Sequence record: NC_023557.1
Length of the DNA stretch: 64,000 bases
Direction: 5' to 3' (one strand)
The position numbers and the translations under genes are program-made. A model generated the notes under the pieces. It did not search any database. It worked only from the letters and a program-made list of their open reading frames with translations, and was not told the origin of the DNA. Positions 45,901 through 55,072 of this stretch are shown in pieces (within the stretch, counting starts at the first letter, position 1; each line of letters begins with the position of its first letter).

Positions 45901-45974
45901 TGAACACCCGTTTTGGTAATTTATTACGTAGTTGATCAATTATAAGAGAGATATTGTTTATTCGAGGGTGTTTC

Positions 45975-47495
45975 ATGGACAAGTTACCAAGTACCGCACT
46001 GCCAAAGGTGTCAATGGTTTTATACACCGATGGCGGTTGTCGTCAAAACATCGGAGGCTGGGGAATACATGGTTATTCCTGGTTGGTTGAAGACGATGAC
46101 AAAAAGAAAAAGAAAAAGCCGGCGCGTGACGTCCCGTCAACGACTGGCTACATTGTAAAAGACGATCCGAAACTCGACAGTCGTGAAGTGGTCAGGCCCC
46201 ACGAAGTGATTGAAGGGTTTGGTGGGATTTTACCTAACACCACGAATAACGTTGCGGAACTCACAGCAACTATTAATGGTATTGACTTAGCACTACAGCA
46301 GAACACAGAAAAGCTCCTCGTCATCTCCGATTCCAAATATGTCGGCGACAATGCAAAGAACCAATTGCATCGTTGGATGAAAGCCGGCTGGAAGAAAGCG
46401 GATGGCGGGGATGTTGCCAACAAAGAGCTGTGGGAAACCCTCAGCAGTAAACTTGATGAGCTGAAATACCGCGGCATCTCGTTTGACATCGAATGGCTGA
46501 AAGGGCATGCGGGTCACCGTGGAAATCAGTTCGCTGACTACATGGCAACCCGTGGTGTCTTTAAAGGCCGTGTTGGTGACGCTACCCCGTATTATCAGAT
46601 CCAGGATGCCGGTGAGTACGATAAGTACAAAACTGAACGTCCGCGCTTTGTCACGCACTCGCGCTGGTACTTCACGTTACAGACTGAAAAGTTGATGAAC
46701 AAGAACGAACAGGGTTTGTACGAGTATTGCTTTGGCCACCCAAGTAAAGGGGATGCTGATCAGCAGTACTTAGGCAAAGCGTTAGCCGACACCGCCTTTA
46801 GTGTGGTGTGGTTGAAAGCACCTGAAGAGTGTTTGGATCTGGTTTATTCACGCACCAAAGAGATCGCTACCGACGTTTACGGTAACGCCTTCATTGGTCG
46901 CCTGGATAACATTTACAACTCATTCATTCACAAAGAGATCATGGACTACGGCGGGTCGTTATTGCAACGTGCGAATAAGTACAACAATGACATCACCAAC
47001 TGTACCGATGCTCAAGTGGTGCGTGAGTGTAACCCGCCAGGTATCTCTTACCGGGCACTGTCGAATTTAGGACAGCTTAGTAAGATCCTGAATGAATTTG
47101 TCAGCGACAGTTTACCTGCGACAACCAGGGTGGTAGAGATTACTGACAAAATCTACCAGACCGTGAAAGGTAAGAAAGAAGATAAGCTGGCATTGCTCGG
47201 TTCGATTCGTCAAACCGACAAAGCGCTCAAGTTCGATGTACCGTGTGATGTACTCGACAAAGCGATCTCCGTCGAAGTTACAGCCACGCTTGGATTGACC
47301 TTACCCAACCGTAATACGTTAAACGGTCTTACGGAACTCAATCCAAAGGTATACCTGTTCTTGACAAAAGAGTCCGACATTGCATTTCGCTACGGATCGA
47401 TTGTGGTATGCGATGAAGGGTATTGCATCATGGCCAACGTATACGCTGACCTGCGTACGCTGTCAAAAAAGGATCTGGAGCGTTGCGGGCAGTAA
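45975..47495 (+). CDS. rnhA: ribonuclease HI, phiKZ-type with C-terminal extension
   Basis: LYTDGG, TNNVAEL, ISDSKY, VANKELW, WLKGHAGHRGNQFADYMA. Confidence 0.92.
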   Translation: MDKLPSTALPKVSMVLYTDGGCRQNIGGWGIHGYSWLVEDDDKKKKKKPARDVPSTTGYIVKDDPKLDSREVVRPHEVIEGFGGILPNTTNNVAELTATINGIDLALQQNTEKLLVISDSKYVGDNAKNQLHRWMKAGWKKADGGDVANKELWETLSSKLDELKYRGISFDIEWLKGHAGHRGNQFADYMATRGVFKGRVGDATPYYQIQDAGEYDKYKTERPRFVTHSRWYFTLQTEKLMNKNEQGLYEYCFGHPSKGDADQQYLGKALADTAFSVVWLKAPEECLDLVYSRTKEIATDVYGNAFIGRLDNIYNSFIHKEIMDYGGSLLQRANKYNNDITNCTDAQVVRECNPPGISYRALSNLGQLSKILNEFVSDSLPATTRVVEITDKIYQTVKGKKEDKLALLGSIRQTDKALKFDVPCDVLDKAISVEVTATLGLTLPNRNTLNGLTELNPKVYLFLTKESDIAFRYGSIVVCDEGYCIMANVYADLRTLSKKDLERCGQ

Positions 47496-47505
47496 AGGGT
47501 GACTT

Positions 47506-47862
47506 GTGACCACGTTATTCGCCGGTGCACCAACCAAGCTTCCGATGATGGACCTGTCTGCGATCATTGATCCAGATAAGGATATCGAGTCTCGGCTTAA
47601 ACGGAAACTGTTATTAACTTTCGTTTGTCATTGTCGACGTCCTCGTGCGAGTGCAGATGAGCTTAACCGCACACATGCACTATGCGAGGACTCGGCAGAC
47701 GTTGAGCAGTGTCTTGATTACATCTCGCGCATGGGTCCTGAGTTCAGTGAAGCTTACGATGGTGTTGATCTTGAATGTGTGATGGATATCATCGGGCGTA
47801 CGCCTGAATGGCTCCGTTACGGATCTGCTATTGAAATGTGGACAGACCTCAAGCAGTTGTAG
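47506..47862 (+). CDS. hypothetical protein
   Basis: GTG start after AGGGT. Confidence 0.65.
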   Translation: MTTLFAGAPTKLPMMDLSAIIDPDKDIESRLKRKLLLTFVCHCRRPRASADELNRTHALCEDSADVEQCLDYISRMGPEFSEAYDGVDLECVMDIIGRTPEWLRYGSAIEMWTDLKQL

Positions 47863-47901
47863 GGCATAAGAGGAGGGCTCACGCCCTCCTCTACTTTATG
47901 C
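47863..47901. terminator. bidirectional hairpin with TTATGC tails
   Basis: GGCATAA-GAGGAGGGC..GCCCTCCTC-TACTTTATGC. Confidence 0.75.
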
Positions 47902-47912
47902 TGCTTTTTTTT

Positions 47913-48710
47913 TTATTTGACTTCTTTTGCCAACTTCACTGCAGTGTTGTTCAGTGCCGTTCCTGTTGAAATGAACAGGGTATGACAAACACTATAGAGA
48001 TCAGCCGCACGGGCCGTAGACAGCAGCGTCTTCGCCAGGTTGTCGATATCGGCCTTGCTGAGTACCAGTTCACCAGACTCAATCTGACTGAAGACCAGAT
48101 CAGACAGTTCCGCCACGCGTTTCACCGCCAGGTTGAAATTGTAGATCTGCCCACGCTTTAACATCGCCACGAGCTTATTAAAGTCAGTGTAGACGTTGGT
48201 GAATTCCGTCAGGTTTGGGAAGCGGGCGGCGAAGCTGATATCAGTGACATCTTTTCCACCCAGCGACTTACCCAACATTGCTTCCACTTTACCCAGGATG
48301 GCCTTGTCCACGTTCGGGGCGTAGGCCACACTGGCATTACCCGCAGAGACACCCGCGAGCCAGGAGTGCAACTTACTGATATGGGTCGACTCCAGCATGG
48401 TACAGAAAGCCCGGGCGGTTGCCAGGTTCTCAACCCATTCCTGATAGCTGACATTCAGACGCGCCGGTTGATAGATCATGCGATCCATGAAGTCGGTGTA
48501 GTTGTGCGATGCCAGCGCTTTGGATAACGGGCTGAGGTCAGCGGTGATCAGATCCTGTGCAGTGCCGTACGCACGATCACTGAAGAACTTCTTAATACCA
48601 TCAAAGAAGTTGCGGATGGGGGCAATAATGTTTAATGCTTCGAGGCCGGCACCGGTTGACTCACGCAGTTCCTGGTAGTCGGCTTCGAGGTTTTCAATGT
48701 TGTACGACAT
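47913..48710 (-). CDS. probable virion head protein
   Basis: GGAG RBS; N-terminal AGLE processing site; core-block position. Confidence 0.6.
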   Translation of the reverse strand: MSYNIENLEADYQELRESTGAGLEALNIIAPIRNFFDGIKKFFSDRAYGTAQDLITADLSPLSKALASHNYTDFMDRMIYQPARLNVSYQEWVENLATARAFCTMLESTHISKLHSWLAGVSAGNASVAYAPNVDKAILGKVEAMLGKSLGGKDVTDISFAARFPNLTEFTNVYTDFNKLVAMLKRGQIYNFNLAVKRVAELSDLVFSQIESGELVLSKADIDNLAKTLLSTARAADLYSVCHTLFISTGTALNNTAVKLAKEVK

Positions 48711-48791
48711 ATGTACTCCGTGAGATAAAAGTAATCTGTTACATAAGATGACTTATTATGAAGGTATTATTAATTAAAAGGACCGCACACA

Positions 48792-50177
48792 ATGTTGTCA
48801 TTCGGTGAATTTGTTGAGAAGTCACGCCCTATTCGACCTTTCTTGAATATCGGCGCGGGCTTTGATATCCCAACCGGTAGCTATCGTTTCGGTAAGCACG
48901 GTGAATCTATTCTTAATGGTGGTCTGGCGCCATTCATTGCGATTGTTGGTAAAGGCAACACCTTTAAAACAGCGATCGGTTGTTTCATGATGACCCGCGT
49001 GCTGGAGCGCTACAATAACTCTAACGGCCTGCACTACGATACCGAGTGTACGTTCAGTGCTGATCGTCTTACCAGTCTTACCAGTCGTCTGGGTCCGAAT
49101 GCTGCTGCAGAGTGGCTGGCCAACGAACGTATCTACCTGACTGATGACTCCATCATTAAAGGTAACCAGTGGTTTAAGAAGTCGGTGCAGGAATACTCCG
49201 AAGCGAAGAAGAAAGCCAAAATGGGTACGCTGCCGTTTGTGGATAAAGATGGGAACCTGATTCCTTATCCATACCCGACAGTCAACTTTGGCGATTCCAT
49301 GTCTGAGATGAAATTCGACGATCTGGAAAAGAACTACGCCAAGATGGAAATCGGCCAGGGTGAAATGCAAACGGAAGCCATGCGTGTGTCGAATGCCAAA
49401 CGCATGTTAATCGAAAAGACCCAGGGTTACGCCAACGCCGGCGGCATGTATGTCATCATGACAGCGCACTTAGGTAAAGAGCTGAACATGGACGGCAAAC
49501 CACAAGAGAAGAAAACCACCTTTATGAAACAAGGTGACAAAATCTCTAAGGTGCCTTCACAGATCCTCTCTCTGCCAAACAACGCCTGGGAGATCTCTAC
49601 CGGTACGGTGTTGATCGATAAGAACACCAAAGAGTGGATGTACCCGAAACAGGGTCGCAATGACGTGGATACCAATGGTAACCCGGACATGATCACTCTG
49701 GTGGCGAAGAACCTGCGCGGGAAGAATGGTCCGTCTGGTGTGCCGTGGGAATTCGTGATGTCACAGTCTGAAGGCCTGCTGCCGTCCCTGACTGAGTTCC
49801 ACTACATTAAGAACAACGGCCGTTATGGCCTGGGTGGCAATGACCGTAATTATTATGTTGAATTGTGCCCAGATATCAAGCTGCAGCGCACCACCGTGCG
49901 TGATCGCATCGACGACAACCCTGAGTTACGTCGGGCATTAGAGATCACCATGGAGATGTGTCAGATGCGTTTCCTGTGGCACACCCGCGATCCAAAGTAC
50001 AACATGACTCCTCAGGAACTGCGCGAAGGCCTGGAGAAGAAAGGGTACAAATGGGATCAGCTGCTCAACACCCGTGGGTTCTGGACGTTTGAAGAAGACA
50101 ACCATCCATTACCATTCTTAAGCACAATGGATCTACTCCGCATGTATCATGATGAGTATCGCCCATACTGGCTGTAA
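48792..50177 (+). CDS. uvsX: UvsX/RecA-like recombinase, phiKZ gp152-type
   Basis: DIPTG, GKGNTFKT, YDTE, DSMSE, KNLRGKNGPSG. Confidence 0.8.
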   Translation: MLSFGEFVEKSRPIRPFLNIGAGFDIPTGSYRFGKHGESILNGGLAPFIAIVGKGNTFKTAIGCFMMTRVLERYNNSNGLHYDTECTFSADRLTSLTSRLGPNAAAEWLANERIYLTDDSIIKGNQWFKKSVQEYSEAKKKAKMGTLPFVDKDGNLIPYPYPTVNFGDSMSEMKFDDLEKNYAKMEIGQGEMQTEAMRVSNAKRMLIEKTQGYANAGGMYVIMTAHLGKELNMDGKPQEKKTTFMKQGDKISKVPSQILSLPNNAWEISTGTVLIDKNTKEWMYPKQGRNDVDTNGNPDMITLVAKNLRGKNGPSGVPWEFVMSQSEGLLPSLTEFHYIKNNGRYGLGGNDRNYYVELCPDIKLQRTTVRDRIDDNPELRRALEITMEMCQMRFLWHTRDPKYNMTPQELREGLEKKGYKWDQLLNTRGFWTFEEDNHPLPFLSTMDLLRMYHDEYRPYWL

Positions 50178-50257
50178 GTGTACCCACTGTGGGAGAGGGA
50201 TAACCCTCTCCTTCTTATACCGTCAGTAGAGGGAAATAAGCTAATAGGAAGCAGTAT

Positions 50258-50677
50258 ATGCTTAACAAAGAAATACGCATTGTCGTTGCGTCGACTAAAG
50301 GTTTCAACGACGCAGAGCGTTTAAAACTGACTATTGACGGCCTCCTGGAAGATATCTACTACCTCAACGAAGGGGTGGGCGATGAGGACGAGGAGTTGAT
50401 CACTGATGCCAAGATCGTTTTCATCACCAATGGCGAACACAAAACAGCGGCTGAGTTGCTGCCTGGTGTGTTGGGTGATCGGAACATCGACATCGAAGTG
50501 ATCAAGGTTGATTGGTCAAAAGGTAAGAAAGCGTTTTTTGATAACTGCGCTGTATTGGGTGCGAAGTCGACCCACGGCGTCATTTTTACGGACAGCAAAG
50601 ATGACGGGATGCAGACACTGCTGAAAGCATGTCTCGATGCCGGCTCACGCGTTCGTACTTATAGCTCTGCTATTTGA
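50258..50677 (+). CDS. degenerate DUF2493/YspA-like SLOG protein
   Basis: RIVVA..GFND.E.L...D, VDW..GK.A...N, GVIF.D..D.G; lacks GxAxGAD and AGxIRN. Confidence 0.55.
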   Translation: MLNKEIRIVVASTKGFNDAERLKLTIDGLLEDIYYLNEGVGDEDEELITDAKIVFITNGEHKTAAELLPGVLGDRNIDIEVIKVDWSKGKKAFFDNCAVLGAKSTHGVIFTDSKDDGMQTLLKACLDAGSRVRTYSSAI

Positions 50678-50690
50678 GAAAGGTAACCCC

Positions 50691-51137
50691 ATGATAGCCT
50701 CAGAAGCTCACGTTAGTATACTTGACGTTAATGTCACCCACGTTATATGCACAGTTAATTGCGAAGGGCATATGGGTCGTGGCATAGCCTTGTATCTGCG
50801 TAAGTGTATTCCGGGGCTATATGAGCGGTATAAACACCTGTGCAGTTTAGGGATCATCACGGTAGACAAACTCTGGATCTACCCATCACACCCCCGTCAG
50901 ATTCTCTGCTTTCCAACCAAAGATAAAACCTGGGAAGACAGCAAGCTTGAATGGATCGAAGCCAATCTCATAAAGCTTCGTGACAACTACAAAACAAAAG
51001 GCATTGTCTCTGTGGCGATGCCTCCTCTTGGATGTGGAAACGGTAACCTAAAGTGGGATGAGGTGCGGAGCCTCATTTATGCCATCTTGGGTGATTGTGA
51101 CCTTGAAGTCCACATCTGTTTAGGTAAACCGAAGTGA
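50691..51137 (+). CDS. DarG/TARG1-like macrodomain ADP-ribosyl hydrolase
   Basis: VNCEGHMGRGIAL, FPTK, SVAMPPLGCGNGNLKW. Confidence 0.88.
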   Translation: MIASEAHVSILDVNVTHVICTVNCEGHMGRGIALYLRKCIPGLYERYKHLCSLGIITVDKLWIYPSHPRQILCFPTKDKTWEDSKLEWIEANLIKLRDNYKTKGIVSVAMPPLGCGNGNLKWDEVRSLIYAILGDCDLEVHICLGKPK

Positions 51138-51166
51138 GGGAAACACCCTGAATAGGAGCCAGTATT

Positions 51167-52048
51167 ATGTCTGATAACGCACACGTTTTACCCGATCCCC
51201 GCGAAGATGGCAAGACGCACATCAACGTCTATAGCCGCGGCGCTACGTGGTTAGGACAGCAGCTTTCTAATATGTCCTACTACGACTTCGCACATCCACG
51301 CTACGGCGTGTTCGCCTCGTTGGAGGGCTTCTGGTATTGGTTGTCTACGGGCAAGCAACACGAGGAGTTACGGAAGCTTGCCGGTGTCAAAGCAAAAATG
51401 ACTGGCCGGGAGTTCGAGACGATCCCAGATGACAACTTTGAAGAAGAGTTCAAAGAAGCCATGCGCCTGCGTCTGGAGCAACACCCGATCATCGCCAACG
51501 CTCTGGCCGAATCCTTACTGCCGTTAAAGCACTATTATTGTTACGGTGGGAAAGTGGTCGACCTGTATGACCGTCACAAATGGCAGATGGACTTCTACGA
51601 GGAGTGGCGTAAAGCCAATGCCCCGGAAGACACCACCTTGGTGCTGTTGATCTCTGGTTCACGTAAAGAGAAAGACTACGACGCCTTTAAGCACATCGTG
51701 ATGACCTACCTGCAACCGTATATCGACAAGGTAAAGGACACGTACAAGATCACCCTGCTCTCGGGGCTTGCCTGGGAAGGTCCTGATGACATGGCAATTC
51801 GTCTGTGTCGGGAAGAAGGCTTCATGTTGATTGGTCTGCCGGCTAAGTGGAAAGAGCAAGGCAAAGCTGCGGGCATGATCCGCAATGGTGCCATGGGGCG
51901 GTTGTGTAACAAGGCTCTGGTGTTCTGGGACGGTGAATCACCGGGGACAAAAGGGATGATTGATTACCTGAAGAAAAATACTATAGACCATCTTGTGTAT
52001 TTACACGGTAAACATGAACCTGACTGGAAAGCCCCGGAGACATCATGA
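51167..52048 (+). CDS. NADAR (T4 gp30.3-like) domain fused to DUF2493/YspA SLOG domain
   Basis: LSN..F.H..YG.F.SLEGFW (NADAR); ISGSR..DY, SGLA.GPD, AKW..GKAAGMIRN, FWDGESPGTKGMI (SLOG). Confidence 0.75.
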   Translation: MSDNAHVLPDPREDGKTHINVYSRGATWLGQQLSNMSYYDFAHPRYGVFASLEGFWYWLSTGKQHEELRKLAGVKAKMTGREFETIPDDNFEEEFKEAMRLRLEQHPIIANALAESLLPLKHYYCYGGKVVDLYDRHKWQMDFYEEWRKANAPEDTTLVLLISGSRKEKDYDAFKHIVMTYLQPYIDKVKDTYKITLLSGLAWEGPDDMAIRLCREEGFMLIGLPAKWKEQGKAAGMIRNGAMGRLCNKALVFWDGESPGTKGMIDYLKKNTIDHLVYLHGKHEPDWKAPETS

Positions 52049-52719
52049 CCCCAGCACGCGAACAGACCCAGCAATTTGTGATCGAGGCTATTGCTGAGAT
52101 TCTCCCCGGTTCTAAGAACCGGGATATCTATATTGACTTCTTCTCGCGGTTGAGCGATGAGGCGTTTGATGCCCTGATGCAGCGGATGGATGAAGACCAG
52201 GAGATCTTCCCCTTCTACCATCCGAACTTTACCGGCACGGTAATTGATGTTGAACGTGTGATCAACTTAATTGAAAAGCACGGCGACACCATCATGGAGC
52301 AGCTCTGGGATATCGACCCAGAAACCGGGCTGCAGTACCTGACTCCACTGAAGTATCCGGTGCTGTTACTTCCGCTGCGTATTCAGCAGCAGAAGCTGCA
52401 GAAGAAGATGTCGATTCCCAAAGACAACAACCACATTGACGATCTGACTAACCAACCCACCACCGAATCCAAAGGGGCTTCCTTGTCTTACCCGGAAGTG
52501 CAGATCATCTATGCCATGGGTGGCGACAAGATCCTGGAAGAGACCATGAAGGTCCGTGGTGGTGATGAGAAGGCGTTTCGTGATTACAATAACGAAATCA
52601 TTGCAAGCGGCGGTGTCACCATTGGCGCAATCAGCAGTAGCAAGACCAAGGTGAAGTCCACCAAAACCGTGCAAGTGATTCTTGAGGCCATGCACCTGAG
52701 CAACAACCTGGCCAGTTAA
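52045..52719 (+). CDS. virion RNA polymerase beta subunit, C-terminal part (phiKZ gp149-like)
   Basis: LRIQQQKLQKK..DDLTNQPT.ESKGASLSYPEVQ..LEE.MKVRGGD parallels the RpoB C-terminus. Confidence 0.8.
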   Translation: MTPAREQTQQFVIEAIAEILPGSKNRDIYIDFFSRLSDEAFDALMQRMDEDQEIFPFYHPNFTGTVIDVERVINLIEKHGDTIMEQLWDIDPETGLQYLTPLKYPVLLLPLRIQQQKLQKKMSIPKDNNHIDDLTNQPTTESKGASLSYPEVQIIYAMGGDKILEETMKVRGGDEKAFRDYNNEIIASGGVTIGAISSSKTKVKSTKTVQVILEAMHLSNNLAS

Positions 52720-52728
52720 GGATGCAAC

Positions 52729-53289
52729 ATGAGTAGCTTGATAAACAACCTGACCGGTAAAAACAAAGCCGAGTTTAACCCGATTGATCTTGACAGTGAA
52801 GTCGAGCGGGTTGTCTCTGAGTATGTCGGTACATACTTACGTAACCGTATCTTTCTGGCGGCGCAATCGAAGACGTCGGTGAATGACGATCCGGGGTATC
52901 TGCAGATTGTAAACTTCTTGGCGTTGGTGAACATGGAGTTCAACCATATGCGCATGTGGTCTACATCCGACATGACCAATACCGTCTGGCCACAGATCGT
53001 TGAAGATGAGTATGTGTTGCGCTTTGTGTTTAAAGGCACCACCCATGTCAGCGTGCGGTGCTTTGATGGCGATGTGCCCTTTCAGAAACTGGTCGACCAT
53101 GTGGCCGGTTCCCTGAGTTGCATGTCGCACGGTGGAAATGAAATCATCGCTGCGGCGTTAACCCAGGTCCTGCCACGCAATGACGAACTGGTTGAGCTCT
53201 TTACCGGTAACCAGTGGTCGTTGTTCATTTATTACCTGACGCGCATTAACATCATTGAGATTGTGACCAATTCGGGAGGTAGTGTATAA
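52729..53289 (+). CDS. conserved phiKZ-like hypothetical protein
   Basis: AAGGA RBS, operon with RNAP subunit. Confidence 0.7.
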   Translation: MSSLINNLTGKNKAEFNPIDLDSEVERVVSEYVGTYLRNRIFLAAQSKTSVNDDPGYLQIVNFLALVNMEFNHMRMWSTSDMTNTVWPQIVEDEYVLRFVFKGTTHVSVRCFDGDVPFQKLVDHVAGSLSCMSHGGNEIIAAALTQVLPRNDELVELFTGNQWSLFIYYLTRINIIEIVTNSGGSV

Positions 53290-54017
53290 TGGTGGGTGGA
53301 GATCGTATTGGGTGTTACGTCCCCCTGGATGCTTTGTTGGATACCCGCATCGGGGTCATTGACCAAGTGGCCGGGGAAGTAGGACTGGGGTTGGTTGAGT
53401 CGTGGTACCATACTCGTACAGCTGATCGCTTTGACCGAAAGGGTACCGCGTTAACGCAGGCGGCATATAAGGCAGCCTGGGCCGCCCGCAGTGAAGAGAC
53501 CTTAAAGCGTACACGCATGACGTTTGTGCCGATGTACCTGATGAACCTGATCAGTCGCTTTAACACCTCACACGGCATGCCGATCATGGCTGCGACCTAC
53601 AACATCACGGTGAACACGTATCCGTATCGGTTATCCGATGAGCGCAAAGAGCAGCTGCAGAAGATCATCGAAACGTACACGTCGGGCATTGCTGAAATCA
53701 CCATTGATTACATCAGTCCAGCAGACCTGACTGTCGAGTACGTGAAGGCGAACTACTCCGTGTGCATCATGTATGAGTTTGATGAGTGGTTGATGCTGCA
53801 TAAAGACGAGTTCAGCCAGACCCAGATGCCCGGGACCGTAATCCTGGCACCTAAGTTGTATCTGGCGGATGTCGGGGAGGATGTGATTAAGCGGGCAGAG
53901 CAGACCGATGGCTTTGCAGGTCTGAGCCTGGCACTCTGTGCATTGGTGACAGTGGTGTTCCTGGATGTAAGGTTGTTCTCTTATGTCACAGACACACCAC
54001 CGAATCTGGATGAGTGA
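53289..54017 (+). CDS. conserved phiKZ-like hypothetical protein
   Basis: GGAGG RBS, TAATG coupling. Confidence 0.7.
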   Translation: MVGGDRIGCYVPLDALLDTRIGVIDQVAGEVGLGLVESWYHTRTADRFDRKGTALTQAAYKAAWAARSEETLKRTRMTFVPMYLMNLISRFNTSHGMPIMAATYNITVNTYPYRLSDERKEQLQKIIETYTSGIAEITIDYISPADLTVEYVKANYSVCIMYEFDEWLMLHKDEFSQTQMPGTVILAPKLYLADVGEDVIKRAEQTDGFAGLSLALCALVTVVFLDVRLFSYVTDTPPNLDE

Positions 54018-54476
54018 TTACTTCTTTTCGCCGCCTGGGTTCATGATATCATCGTACTCGATGTGTTCACTGCCTTGACGGGTCTCGCCTGCTTTGAACT
54101 CCGGTACCGGTAATTGACTGGCATCCGGGGTTGGAGCAGGGACGGCGGCAATCGAGGTATCTGCCCCTTCACCACGCAGGGCAAAACCACCGGCAGCCAA
54201 CACTTGCTTAACTGCACCGATGATAACAGCACCTTGCGCTTCGTCGTTCTCTTGGGCTTTCTGCTCAAGGTCAAGACGTTGACGGTTAATGATGGATTTG
54301 TCGATATCACCCATCGCGGTCAAGGCGATCTTCAACATCTTCGGGTCTTGTCGGGAGGCCTTGATGGGAGCACCGGACTCAGAGTCCTTCTCATCAAGGA
54401 TATCTTCGACAATCCCTAACCGTCGCATTTGCATACGACGCATCAAGGCCGCATCGTCTAATTCATAATCAGCCAT
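54018..54476 (-). CDS. conserved phiKZ-like hypothetical protein
   Basis: GGAGG RBS supports start at 54476. Confidence 0.7.
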   Translation of the reverse strand: MADYELDDAALMRRMQMRRLGIVEDILDEKDSESGAPIKASRQDPKMLKIALTAMGDIDKSIINRQRLDLEQKAQENDEAQGAVIIGAVKQVLAAGGFALRGEGADTSIAAVPAPTPDASQLPVPEFKAGETRQGSEHIEYDDIMNPGGEKK

Positions 54477-54497
54477 GAGGCCTCCAGAATAATTCAC

Positions 54498-54516
54498 ACC
54501 TACATTATCTAGGTGA
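54498..54516 (+). promoter_or_regulatory. putative phage early promoter
   Basis: ACCTACATTAT-ctag-GTGA. Confidence 0.55.
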
Positions 54517-54541
54517 TCGTAGTGTATTAAAAGGAATCGTT

Positions 54542-55072
54542 ATGCGCTTTTTTAAAAAGCTTGCACTCAAACGATGCATGGCGATGTTGCGTGATGCGAA
54601 GCACGATACCTTCACCGCGCAAGAAAGCATGAACGTTCTACATGTGCTTGATACCGTGATTTCCACGGACGGCATCATAAAATATTTCGATGTTCGGGTT
54701 TCGCTCTCCATATTGATGGAAACACAACTCCCCAATGCGATGGCGATGCTGGACTTGATCACCGAAATAAACAAACACATTCAAAAGGATTTGGATGCCA
54801 CGTTACCGGATCACGGGACACTATTTGCTGAGTTTCGTGATCTGCGAGTCTTAAGCTTATATGACTGGTTATCTGATAGCGCGGGTCGAGTAGTAGATGC
54901 ACCACACTTTTACCAACTGTTCATTGATCAGTTGAACCAATTAATTACCGTTATAGTGAACTGTGAAGACCAGGCAACCCAACAGTATTATCTGCGTAGA
55001 TTGCAACCGCTCTACAACGAATTACTGGGAACAGTGTATGCGGCGTTACACTGCGGAATGCTGAGTCTCTAA
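54542..55072 (+). CDS. hypothetical protein
   Basis: AAGGA RBS. Confidence 0.7.
   Translation: MRFFKKLALKRCMAMLRDAKHDTFTAQESMNVLHVLDTVISTDGIIKYFDVRVSLSILMETQLPNAMAMLDLITEINKHIQKDLDATLPDHGTLFAEFRDLRVLSLYDWLSDSAGRVVDAPHFYQLFIDQLNQLITVIVNCEDQATQQYYLRRLQPLYNELLGTVYAALHCGMLSL

Follow-up and report, generated by a model that had tools for sequence, protein, structure and literature searches.

A conserved SLOG, macrodomain and NADAR-SLOG locus beside uvsX in Erwinia phage Ea35-70, a candidate module against DarT-type DNA ADP-ribosylation

We investigated a 64-kb stretch of phage DNA from sequence record NC_023557.1 (hereafter the window) and focused on three co-oriented open reading frames (ORFs) that follow a recombinase gene and are named Ea357_150, Ea357_151 and Ea357_152 in the record (hereafter genes 150, 151 and 152). 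The window matches Erwinia phage Ea35-70 (genome of 271 kb) at 100% identity and phage RAY with its relatives at 98%, and window position 50000 corresponds to position 112000 of the Ea35-70 record. Ea35-70 belongs to the genus Agricanvirus and is a nucleus-forming jumbo phage (chimallivirus) of the fire-blight bacterium. Gene 150 encodes a stand-alone, divergent SLOG domain, gene 151 a macrodomain and gene 152 (51167-52048 as a whole) a NADAR domain fused to a second SLOG domain (Table 1), with gaps of 13 nt between genes 150 and 151 and 29 nt between genes 151 and 152. An earlier reading of this DNA from its letters alone (the sequence-only reading) had placed three adjacent genes between uvsX and a subunit of the virion RNA polymerase (vRNAP), and this arrangement was borne out by the ORFs and by the matches of the flanking genes to phrog_97 and phrog_3233. 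It had also recognized a DarG-like macrodomain with an FPTK lysine and a gp30.3-like NADAR joined to an intact SLOG. Both assignments held in the profile and structure comparisons given below, including an AlphaFold model of gene 152 that supports the NADAR as well as the SLOG fold.

Gene 151 matches the Pfam Macro family (1.4e-9) and the DarG models of NCBIfam (1.8e-37) and PADLOC (1.3e-40), in the latter two over the macrodomain part of the models only. Among solved structures it matched the DarG macrodomains of M. tuberculosis and T. aquaticus (5m3i, 1.4e-22; 5m31, 1.1e-20), and its FPTK motif (aa 74-77) aligns with the FPTK of both, so that Lys77 (codon 50919-50921) takes the place of K80, the catalytic lysine of T. 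aquaticus DarG. A second residue, Asn23 in the motif TVN (codon 50757-50759), aligns with N23 of the PhiKZ gp104 homolog KTN4_132, to which gene 151 is 34% identical (E 8e-22). The protein consists of the macrodomain only, without the DarT-binding C-terminal domain of DarG, and it is the sole macrodomain encoded in the Ea35-70 genome; a search of the whole Ea35-70 record for DarT (PF14487) gave no match at E <= 0.1. Judged by sequence, gene 151 is a further member of the published AdfM family, the chimallivirus DarG2-like enzymes that clear DarT2 marks from DNA and were named by Morgan et al. 2026 (PMC13309987). For AdfM of PhiKZ, its gp104, activity, nuclear import and requirement on DarTG2 hosts were shown, mutation of N23 lowered activity, and localisation was shown for PhiPA3 and Erwinia phage Asesino as well (PMC13309987). 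Gene 151 shares with PhiKZ gp104 the orphan DarG2-like macrodomain of about 150 aa and retains both Asn23 and the FPTK lysine. In contrast to the PhiKZ and Asesino genes, which lie elsewhere, it is located beside uvsX, and it is coupled to a NADAR-SLOG gene, to which it is fused in sister phages.

The N-terminal domain of gene 152 was assigned by its fold, a profile-profile match and its catalytic residues, as the curated Pfam models are not reached. In the AlphaFold model (19 homologs; mean predicted local distance difference test score, pLDDT, 89.6) residues 9-155 resemble the Phytophthora NADAR 8bau with Z 11.0 and a root mean square deviation of 3.4 (138 of 189 residues aligned), and Foldseek matched the same structure with a probability of 1.00. 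The profile of the domain matched T4 gp30.3 in hhalign (80% probability, E 1.3e-5), and this alignment superposes the LSN(F) motif (LSN at aa 33-35), Glu53 on E36 of AdfN and His122 on the histidine of gp30.3. At least 90% of the 19 homologs share Glu53 (in LEGFW; 51323-51325) and His122 (in LPLKHYY; 51530-51532), and His122 stands at the start of the modelled strand 123-126. In phage gp30.3-type NADARs the last strand characteristically has a histidine, where NADARs of the YbiA type have Glu and those of the DarG1 type Asp. AdfN (T4 gp30.3) removes DarT1 guanine marks with E36 and K43 as essential residues (Johannesman et al. 2025, PMC11257639), and their counterparts in PnNADAR are the catalytic Glu E43 and the phosphate-binding Lys K50. 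The three phage NADARs examined in that work, those of T4, Bas32 and Bas60, acted as guanine-specific DNA glycohydrolases (PMC11257639). Some NADARs also reverse cytidine marks. From the modelled fold and the alignment we classify the domain as a His-type phage NADAR like T4 gp30.3/AdfN, with which it has in common the fold, a motif of the LSNF type, the catalytic Glu and, in the last strand, the phage-type His. It differs from AdfN in its 3-4 residue insertion before the Lys, in the SLOG fusion, in being encoded by a nucleus-forming phage and in belonging to a very divergent clade without a significant Pfam match. This clade is phrog_652 (5.2e-36), to which no function is assigned and of which we found no tested member in the literature searched; the domain family was found in 556 phage records.

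The C-terminal domain of gene 152 (residues 156-293) showed the SLOG fold, with Z-scores of 11.1 for ThsA, 10.8 for ShosA and 10.7 for DprA; the ThsA matches ranged from Z 9.7 to 11.1 at 12-13% identity and included the form bound to 3' cyclic ADP-ribose (3'cADPR). All four pocket motifs are intact, namely GSR (164-166), SGLAWEGPD (199-207), IRN (238-240) and PGTK (259-262), and they correspond to invariant or nearly invariant columns of the family alignment. In library searches with gene 152 this half matched the PF10686 YAcAr family (1.4e-4) and phrog_289 (2.9e-20), and the domain searched alone matched PF10686 with 1.8e-5, just under the gathering score. The relatives of the domain matched PF10686 in 13 of 13 cases (best 1.6e-14; the scores listed, for P0004, P0006, P0007, P0013 and P0022, pass gathering), and 7 of the 13 matched PF02481 (DprA) below the gathering score (best 2.9e-5), although gene 152 itself gave no PF02481 match. 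In Pfam the family matched YAcAr, DprA and cpYpsA and no family of the LOG or ThsA type, and a profile search of the PDB ranked DprA first (E 0.02) and gave no sequence-level match to ThsA. Therefore, as far as sequence comparison goes, the domain is nearest to DprA after YAcAr, and not to ThsA or LOG. SLOG domains of these groups bind different ligands, ssDNA (single-stranded DNA) in the case of DprA, glyco-cyclic ADP-ribose (gcADPR) in ThsA and AMP derivatives in LOG. With all of them the domain has in common the Rossmann-like SLOG fold (Z about 9-11) and the GSR, GxD, RN and GT motifs, but it is a single domain lacking the flanking domains of DprA and the SIR2 effector of ThsA, and the part N-terminal to it is a NADAR and not the SAM-like domain of DprA. 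Roughly 490 phage records contain viral YAcAr SLOG domains; the literature searched gave no function assigned to them by experiment. A stand-alone phage SLOG annotated as Smf/DprA, ORF83, has been reported as an anti-type III Avs factor with predicted AMP binding, and its amoeba-virus homologs are fused to DUF4326 (bioRxiv 10.1101/2025.06.06.658234).

By homology gene 150 is placed in the same superfamily, but it lacks all four canonical motifs. It matched phrog_289 (1.6e-6) and aligned with the SLOG domain of gene 152 in hhalign with 96% probability (E 1.5e-9); PF10686 was matched weakly by 14 of 14 family members (best 3.4e-5), and a features-based search of the ESM Atlas found YAcAr clusters. 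In its pocket ASTKG stands for GSR, TNGE for SGxAxGxD, FDNC for IRN and DDGM for PGT, and these replacement motifs are invariant across its own family. The sequence-only reading had described this gene as a degenerate SLOG. The SLOG assignment was supported at the level of homology, whereas the ratio of nonsynonymous to synonymous substitution rates (dN/dS) of 0.12-0.26 indicates purifying selection, for which reason we prefer 'divergent but constrained' to 'degenerate': gene 150 is remodelled and not decaying. The family is narrow (21 phage records) and was always found at the uvsX/vRNAP locus in the records examined. Its structure model is of moderate quality (pLDDT 65) and Rossmann-like, with CARF and other Rossmann-like domains as the best matches (Z 8-9.4). 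We also considered a HAD phosphatase, as the family alignment gave weak profile matches to HAD phosphatases of the PDB (E 0.009-0.03). These matches cover the C-terminal half of, for example, N-acylneuraminate-9-phosphatase and run through the TNG, K...F and D..G motifs. We rejected this assignment as spurious or convergent because there is no DxD motif I after strand 1, because all 14 members match YAcAr and none a Pfam HAD family, and because the hhalign match to SLOG is far stronger. Its probable nature is that of a paralog whose pocket was remodelled and which serves as a partner or regulator.

For comparison we analyzed six other loci of related phages and metagenome contigs (Table 1). 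The conserved order is uvsX, divergent SLOG, X and vRNAP beta, where the content of X is variable and the stand-alone SLOG is always present. UvsX forms the left flank in all six (on metagenome contig L008 only the 3' end of uvsX is present) and the vRNAP beta piece is the conserved right flank. Between these flanks the macrodomain and the NADAR-SLOG are found as separate genes or as one chain, the macrodomain is fused directly to SLOG, or a Macro-NADAR gene precedes a NADAR-SLOG gene. In the last case, that of Salmonella phage vB_SalM_SA002, the second gene starts with the 43 C-terminal residues of a macrodomain, and the whole arrangement suggests that part of the fused gene was duplicated in tandem. 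The protein of Proteus phage 10 offers the Macro-SLOG pairing in isolation, as a natural construct. In AH06 and metagenome contig L012 two further genes were observed, which are absent from Ea35-70: the extra ORF of 113-115 aa (AH06, L002:5145-5492; L012:4663-5004), without a Pfam or PHROG match, and the 94-aa gene (AH06, L002:6377-6661; L012:5889-6173), which belongs to phrog_625, annotated 'RNA binding protein'. More distant relatives either have DUF4326 fused to the NADAR-SLOG core or carry just the NADAR; the genomic context of the distant DUF4326-NADAR-SLOG proteins had no informative neighbours. Across genes 150, 151 and 152 dN/dS was 0.06-0.26. Since the genes are adjacent here, fused as Macro-NADAR-SLOG elsewhere and always found at one locus, we regard them as functionally linked, and since the SLOG is the constant partner of either hydrolase, its role should be tied to a shared ssDNA substrate or to the ADP-ribose moiety.

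Table 1. Features of the Ea35-70 locus (window positions) and content of position X between the stand-alone SLOG gene and the vRNAP beta gene in Ea35-70 and related loci
Feature	Location	Strand	Evidence or content
UvsX-like recombinase, Ea357_149	48792..50177	+	phrog_97 'UvsX-like recombinase', 1.8e-56; upstream neighbour
14-mer ATAGGANNCAGTAT, including the gene 150 ribosome-binding site	50244..50257	+	second copy 51152-51165, directly before gene 152
Stand-alone divergent YAcAr-type SLOG, Ea357_150, 139 aa	50258..50677	+	phrog_289, 1.6e-6; hhalign
AdfM-type (DarG2-like) macrodomain, Ea357_151, 148 aa	50691..51137	+	Pfam, NCBIfam, PADLOC and PDB matches
NADAR, N-terminal domain of Ea357_152, about aa 9-155	51167..51631	+	AlphaFold model, 8bau, hhalign to T4 gp30.3
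Canonical YAcAr-type SLOG, C-terminal domain of Ea357_152, aa 156-293	51632..52048	+	PF10686, fold matches
RNA polymerase beta-subunit piece, Ea357_153	52045..52719	+	phrog_3233, 3.3e-99; downstream neighbour
X in Ea35-70 and RAY			Macro, then NADAR-SLOG (two genes)
X in AH06 and metagenome contig L012			Macro, extra 113-115 aa ORF, NADAR-SLOG; then 94-aa gene
X in pEa_SNUABM_48 and metagenome contig L008			single Macro-NADAR-SLOG protein, 429 and 422 aa, respectively
X in Salmonella phage vB_SalM_SA002	L015:3927-5803		Macro-NADAR (290 aa), then macrodomain-fragment-NADAR-SLOG (326 aa)
X in Proteus phage 10	L016:3927-4757		Macro-SLOG without NADAR, 276 aa

The place of action is suggested by published localisation data. 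The ortholog of gene 152 in RAY is RAY_153, which occupies the corresponding genome position and is 96.8% identical over the 158 N-terminal residues to which the comparison was confined. Its product, RAY gp153, is annotated "DprA", and the tagged protein co-localised with phage DNA in the nucleus, where the RAY UvsX gp150 was likewise found (Prichard et al. 2023, PMC10299810). RAY gp153 is presented there as a recombination protein, and the text of that paper mentions neither a NADAR domain nor the neighbouring macrodomain. As both RAY gp153 and AdfM are nuclear, an action on DNA is likely. Taken together, we consider it probable that the three genes form a counter-defence module that, inside the phage nucleus, strips from the bases of phage ssDNA the ADP-ribose attached by host transferases of the DarT type. 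The macrodomain of gene 151 would hydrolyse thymine-linked ADP-ribose, the DarT2 mark, and the NADAR of gene 152 would hydrolyse guanine-linked and possibly cytosine-linked ADP-ribose, the former being the DarT1 mark. The SLOG of gene 152 would most likely be a non-catalytic accessory module that holds the hydrolase heads on their substrate, either by DprA-like ssDNA binding or by binding the ADP-ribose-nucleotide moiety, with gene 150 probably as a partner or regulator. While the domain identities, catalytic residues, fusion and fission series and purifying selection are observed here, the substrates of gp151 and gp152, the products of genes 151 and 152, and all SLOG roles are what we infer. 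By analogy, the locus would resemble bacterial DarG2 and DarG1, in which a macrodomain serves for ADP-ribosylated thymine and a NADAR for ADP-ribosylated guanine on ssDNA; in contrast to these, the phage has neither a cognate DarT nor a DarT-binding domain and has both hydrolase types in one locus or chain. The sequence-only reading had proposed that one operon could neutralise both DarTG types. By analogy with the published AdfM and AdfN work this is a reasonable inference, because an AdfM-type macrodomain stands beside an AdfN-like NADAR, and it is strengthened by the Macro-NADAR-SLOG chains in the sister phages.

Several observations weigh against this proposal. For the NADAR, the curated models stayed below threshold in the 19 homologs (PF08010 Phage_30_3 in 2 of 19, best 0.15; PF08719 NADAR in 1 of 19, 0.064), and the Pfam, NCBIfam and PADLOC searches with gene 152 gave no match for its N-terminal half. 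Searching the PDB with that half by phmmer returned noise only, and the family profile gave YbiA (0.52) and 8bau (0.76) among eight weak matches with E 0.5-0.8, ranked under spurious collagen and chitinase matches. Lys63 lies one position off K43 of AdfN in the hhalign alignment, after a 4-residue insertion, and is replaced by Cys, Arg or others in some homologs, although most of them retain a basic residue within 1-2 positions. One study found no rescue of DarT1 toxicity by T4 gp30.3 in cells, so that NADAR activity in vitro does not necessarily bring protection. For the SLOG, fold comparison cannot separate DNA binding from nucleotide binding, as the Z-scores for ThsA, ShosA and DprA (10.7-11.1) are nearly equal, and the fusion of DUF4326, a predicted phosphatase, to the same NADAR-SLOG core agrees no less well with a role in processing small ADP-ribose derivatives. 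Finally, DarTG is listed but apparently rare in the E. amylovora pangenome (317 genomes), and the selective agent may therefore be another ADP-ribosyltransferase or another host.

A more specific form of the proposed module concerns the SLOG domains, and we put it forward tentatively. Here the SLOGs would be DNA-directed adaptors: a DprA-like SLOG would read ssDNA or the ADP-ribosylated base and carry interchangeable heads (macrodomain, NADAR or both), with gene 150 as an obligate pseudo-enzyme partner, in a repair complex beside UvsX in the nucleus.

Among the alternatives, we regard it as unlikely that the module intercepts soluble ADP-ribose-derived immune signals or toxins, such as gcADPR or cyclic ADP-ribose (cADPR) made by TIR systems, or ADP-ribose 1''-phosphate (ADPr-1''P), with the SLOG as a binding or N-glycosidase part. 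The resemblance of the gene 152 SLOG to that of ThsA, the 3'cADPR-bound form included (Z 9.8-11.1), would fit such a role, as would the joining of the NADAR-SLOG core to DUF4326 in relatives, where it is a predicted ribose-phosphate phosphatase, and the anti-Avs activity reported for ORF83 with its predicted AMP binding. Comparative genomics of the Aravind group argues in the same direction for the Macro, NADAR, SLOG and DUF4326 fusions of phages (PMC7824862, PMC9503650). However, the cytoplasm is where signals of this kind are produced and sensed, whereas the RAY ortholog of gene 152 is found with the DNA in the nucleus; the AdfM macrodomain family and the tested phage NADARs act on DNA in experiments; and the Pfam matches of the SLOG family (YAcAr, DprA and cpYpsA) include no LOG family. 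In addition, Thoeris is never mentioned in the text of the 317-genome pangenome study of E. amylovora. The suggestion of the sequence-only reading that the SLOGs sense or sequester gcADPR thus found no specific support, given the nuclear RAY ortholog, a SLOG nearest to DprA after YAcAr and the unmentioned Thoeris. We note that the Aravind-group architectures comprise the same combinations as found here, among them fusions of the YAcAr SLOG with Macro, NADAR or both; their prediction concerns soluble ADP-ribose signals, whereas the nuclear localisation, the AdfM and AdfN biochemistry and the DprA affinity found here point to ADP-ribosylated DNA.

A role of gene 152, and possibly also of gene 150, as a DprA-like mediator that loads UvsX on ssDNA, with the NADAR and the macrodomain in an unrelated or secondary role, likewise seems quite unlikely to us. 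RAY and AH06 carry this annotation, the genes lie directly downstream of uvsX in every locus variant, and both RAY gp153 and UvsX are nuclear. Moreover, no solved structure matches in sequence better than DprA, PF02481 is found in 7 of 13 relatives, and since jumbo phages lack UvsY a SLOG/DprA substitute has been proposed in the literature. The likeness to DprA is, however, limited to the Rossmann-like core, and gene 152 itself does not match PF02481. The constant fusion partners are ADP-ribose hydrolases and not recombination domains, the catalytic Glu and His of the NADAR are kept under constraint, and the distant NADAR-SLOG proteins have no recognisable recombinase nearby, their neighbours being largely unannotated. 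A housekeeping role, in which the genes would reverse or tune a phage-encoded transferase or clear ADP-ribose by-products of RNA repair or NAD-dependent ligation, appears very improbable: in other phages macrodomain and NADAR genes do lie near ADP-ribosyltransferase or RNA-repair genes, but this phage genome has no DarT-family gene and the immediate neighbourhood no ADP-ribosyltransferase or RNA-repair gene (other transferase families were not searched genome-wide).

Regarding the remaining features of the locus, the macrodomain ORF could also start at 50637, but 50691 is most likely the start of the gene because it is the annotated ATG, is preceded by a ribosome-binding site and gives the same N-terminal residues as in the fused homologs. 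Downstream, the start of Ea357_153 overlaps the stop of gene 152 by 4 nt, and its counterpart in RAY is annotated as vRNAP beta subunit 2. The sequence ATAGGANNCAGTAT has 2 matches in 64 kb compared to 0.17 expected, both immediately 5' of start codons (genes 150 and 152). A translation or late-promoter signal common to both genes is one possible explanation, the trace of a duplication that yielded both SLOG genes another; as the pattern was derived after both sites had been seen, we treat it as a lead only. A scan for sigma-70 promoters stayed at chance level (7 sites compared to 7.4 expected), which is no surprise since the phage uses RNA polymerases of its own. Terminator-like sites across 47400-54600 numbered 14, compared to 5.9 in shuffled sequence, and a strong terminator-like hairpin with a 10-bp stem and 7 G-C pairs was observed at 47869-47892, between the convergent genes 47506-47862 (+) and 47913-48710 (-). 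Further upstream, 45954-47495 encodes a protein of 513 aa that matches phrog_3265 'ribonuclease', with an RNase H domain spanning residues 93-202 only.

The sequence-only reading had taken the NADAR-SLOG fusion to be uncharacterised, which overstates its novelty. Iyer, Burroughs, Aravind et al. (2021 and 2022; PMC7824862, PMC9503650) had described NADAR-SLOG, Macro-SLOG and DUF4326 fusions of jumbo phages by computational analysis, and a full-text search for NADAR together with SLOG returned only these two papers and one phage genome note, with no biochemical characterisation in the literature searched. New here are the fusion and fission series at one syntenic locus and the constrained, remodelled stand-alone SLOG. 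Also new is that the nuclear "DprA" of RAY contains, by sequence, a NADAR domain and is thus likely a second nuclear anti-DarT factor. If this is true, the published RAY "DprA" needs re-annotation.

The work on AdfM showed that the phage nucleus gives chimallivirus DNA incomplete protection against DarT2. Should the NADAR-SLOG protein prove to be another anti-DarT enzyme of the nucleus, the guanine-specific DarT1 branch would be covered by these phages as well, and if the SLOGs are adaptors as outlined above, the large viral YAcAr SLOG family, with about 490 phage records, would gain its first function. Split and fused forms as they occur in nature (Macro with NADAR-SLOG, Macro-NADAR-SLOG and Macro-SLOG) provide ready-made constructs for studying the contribution of the SLOG. 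As these phages are candidates for the biocontrol of fire blight, their counter-defence repertoire bears on host range.

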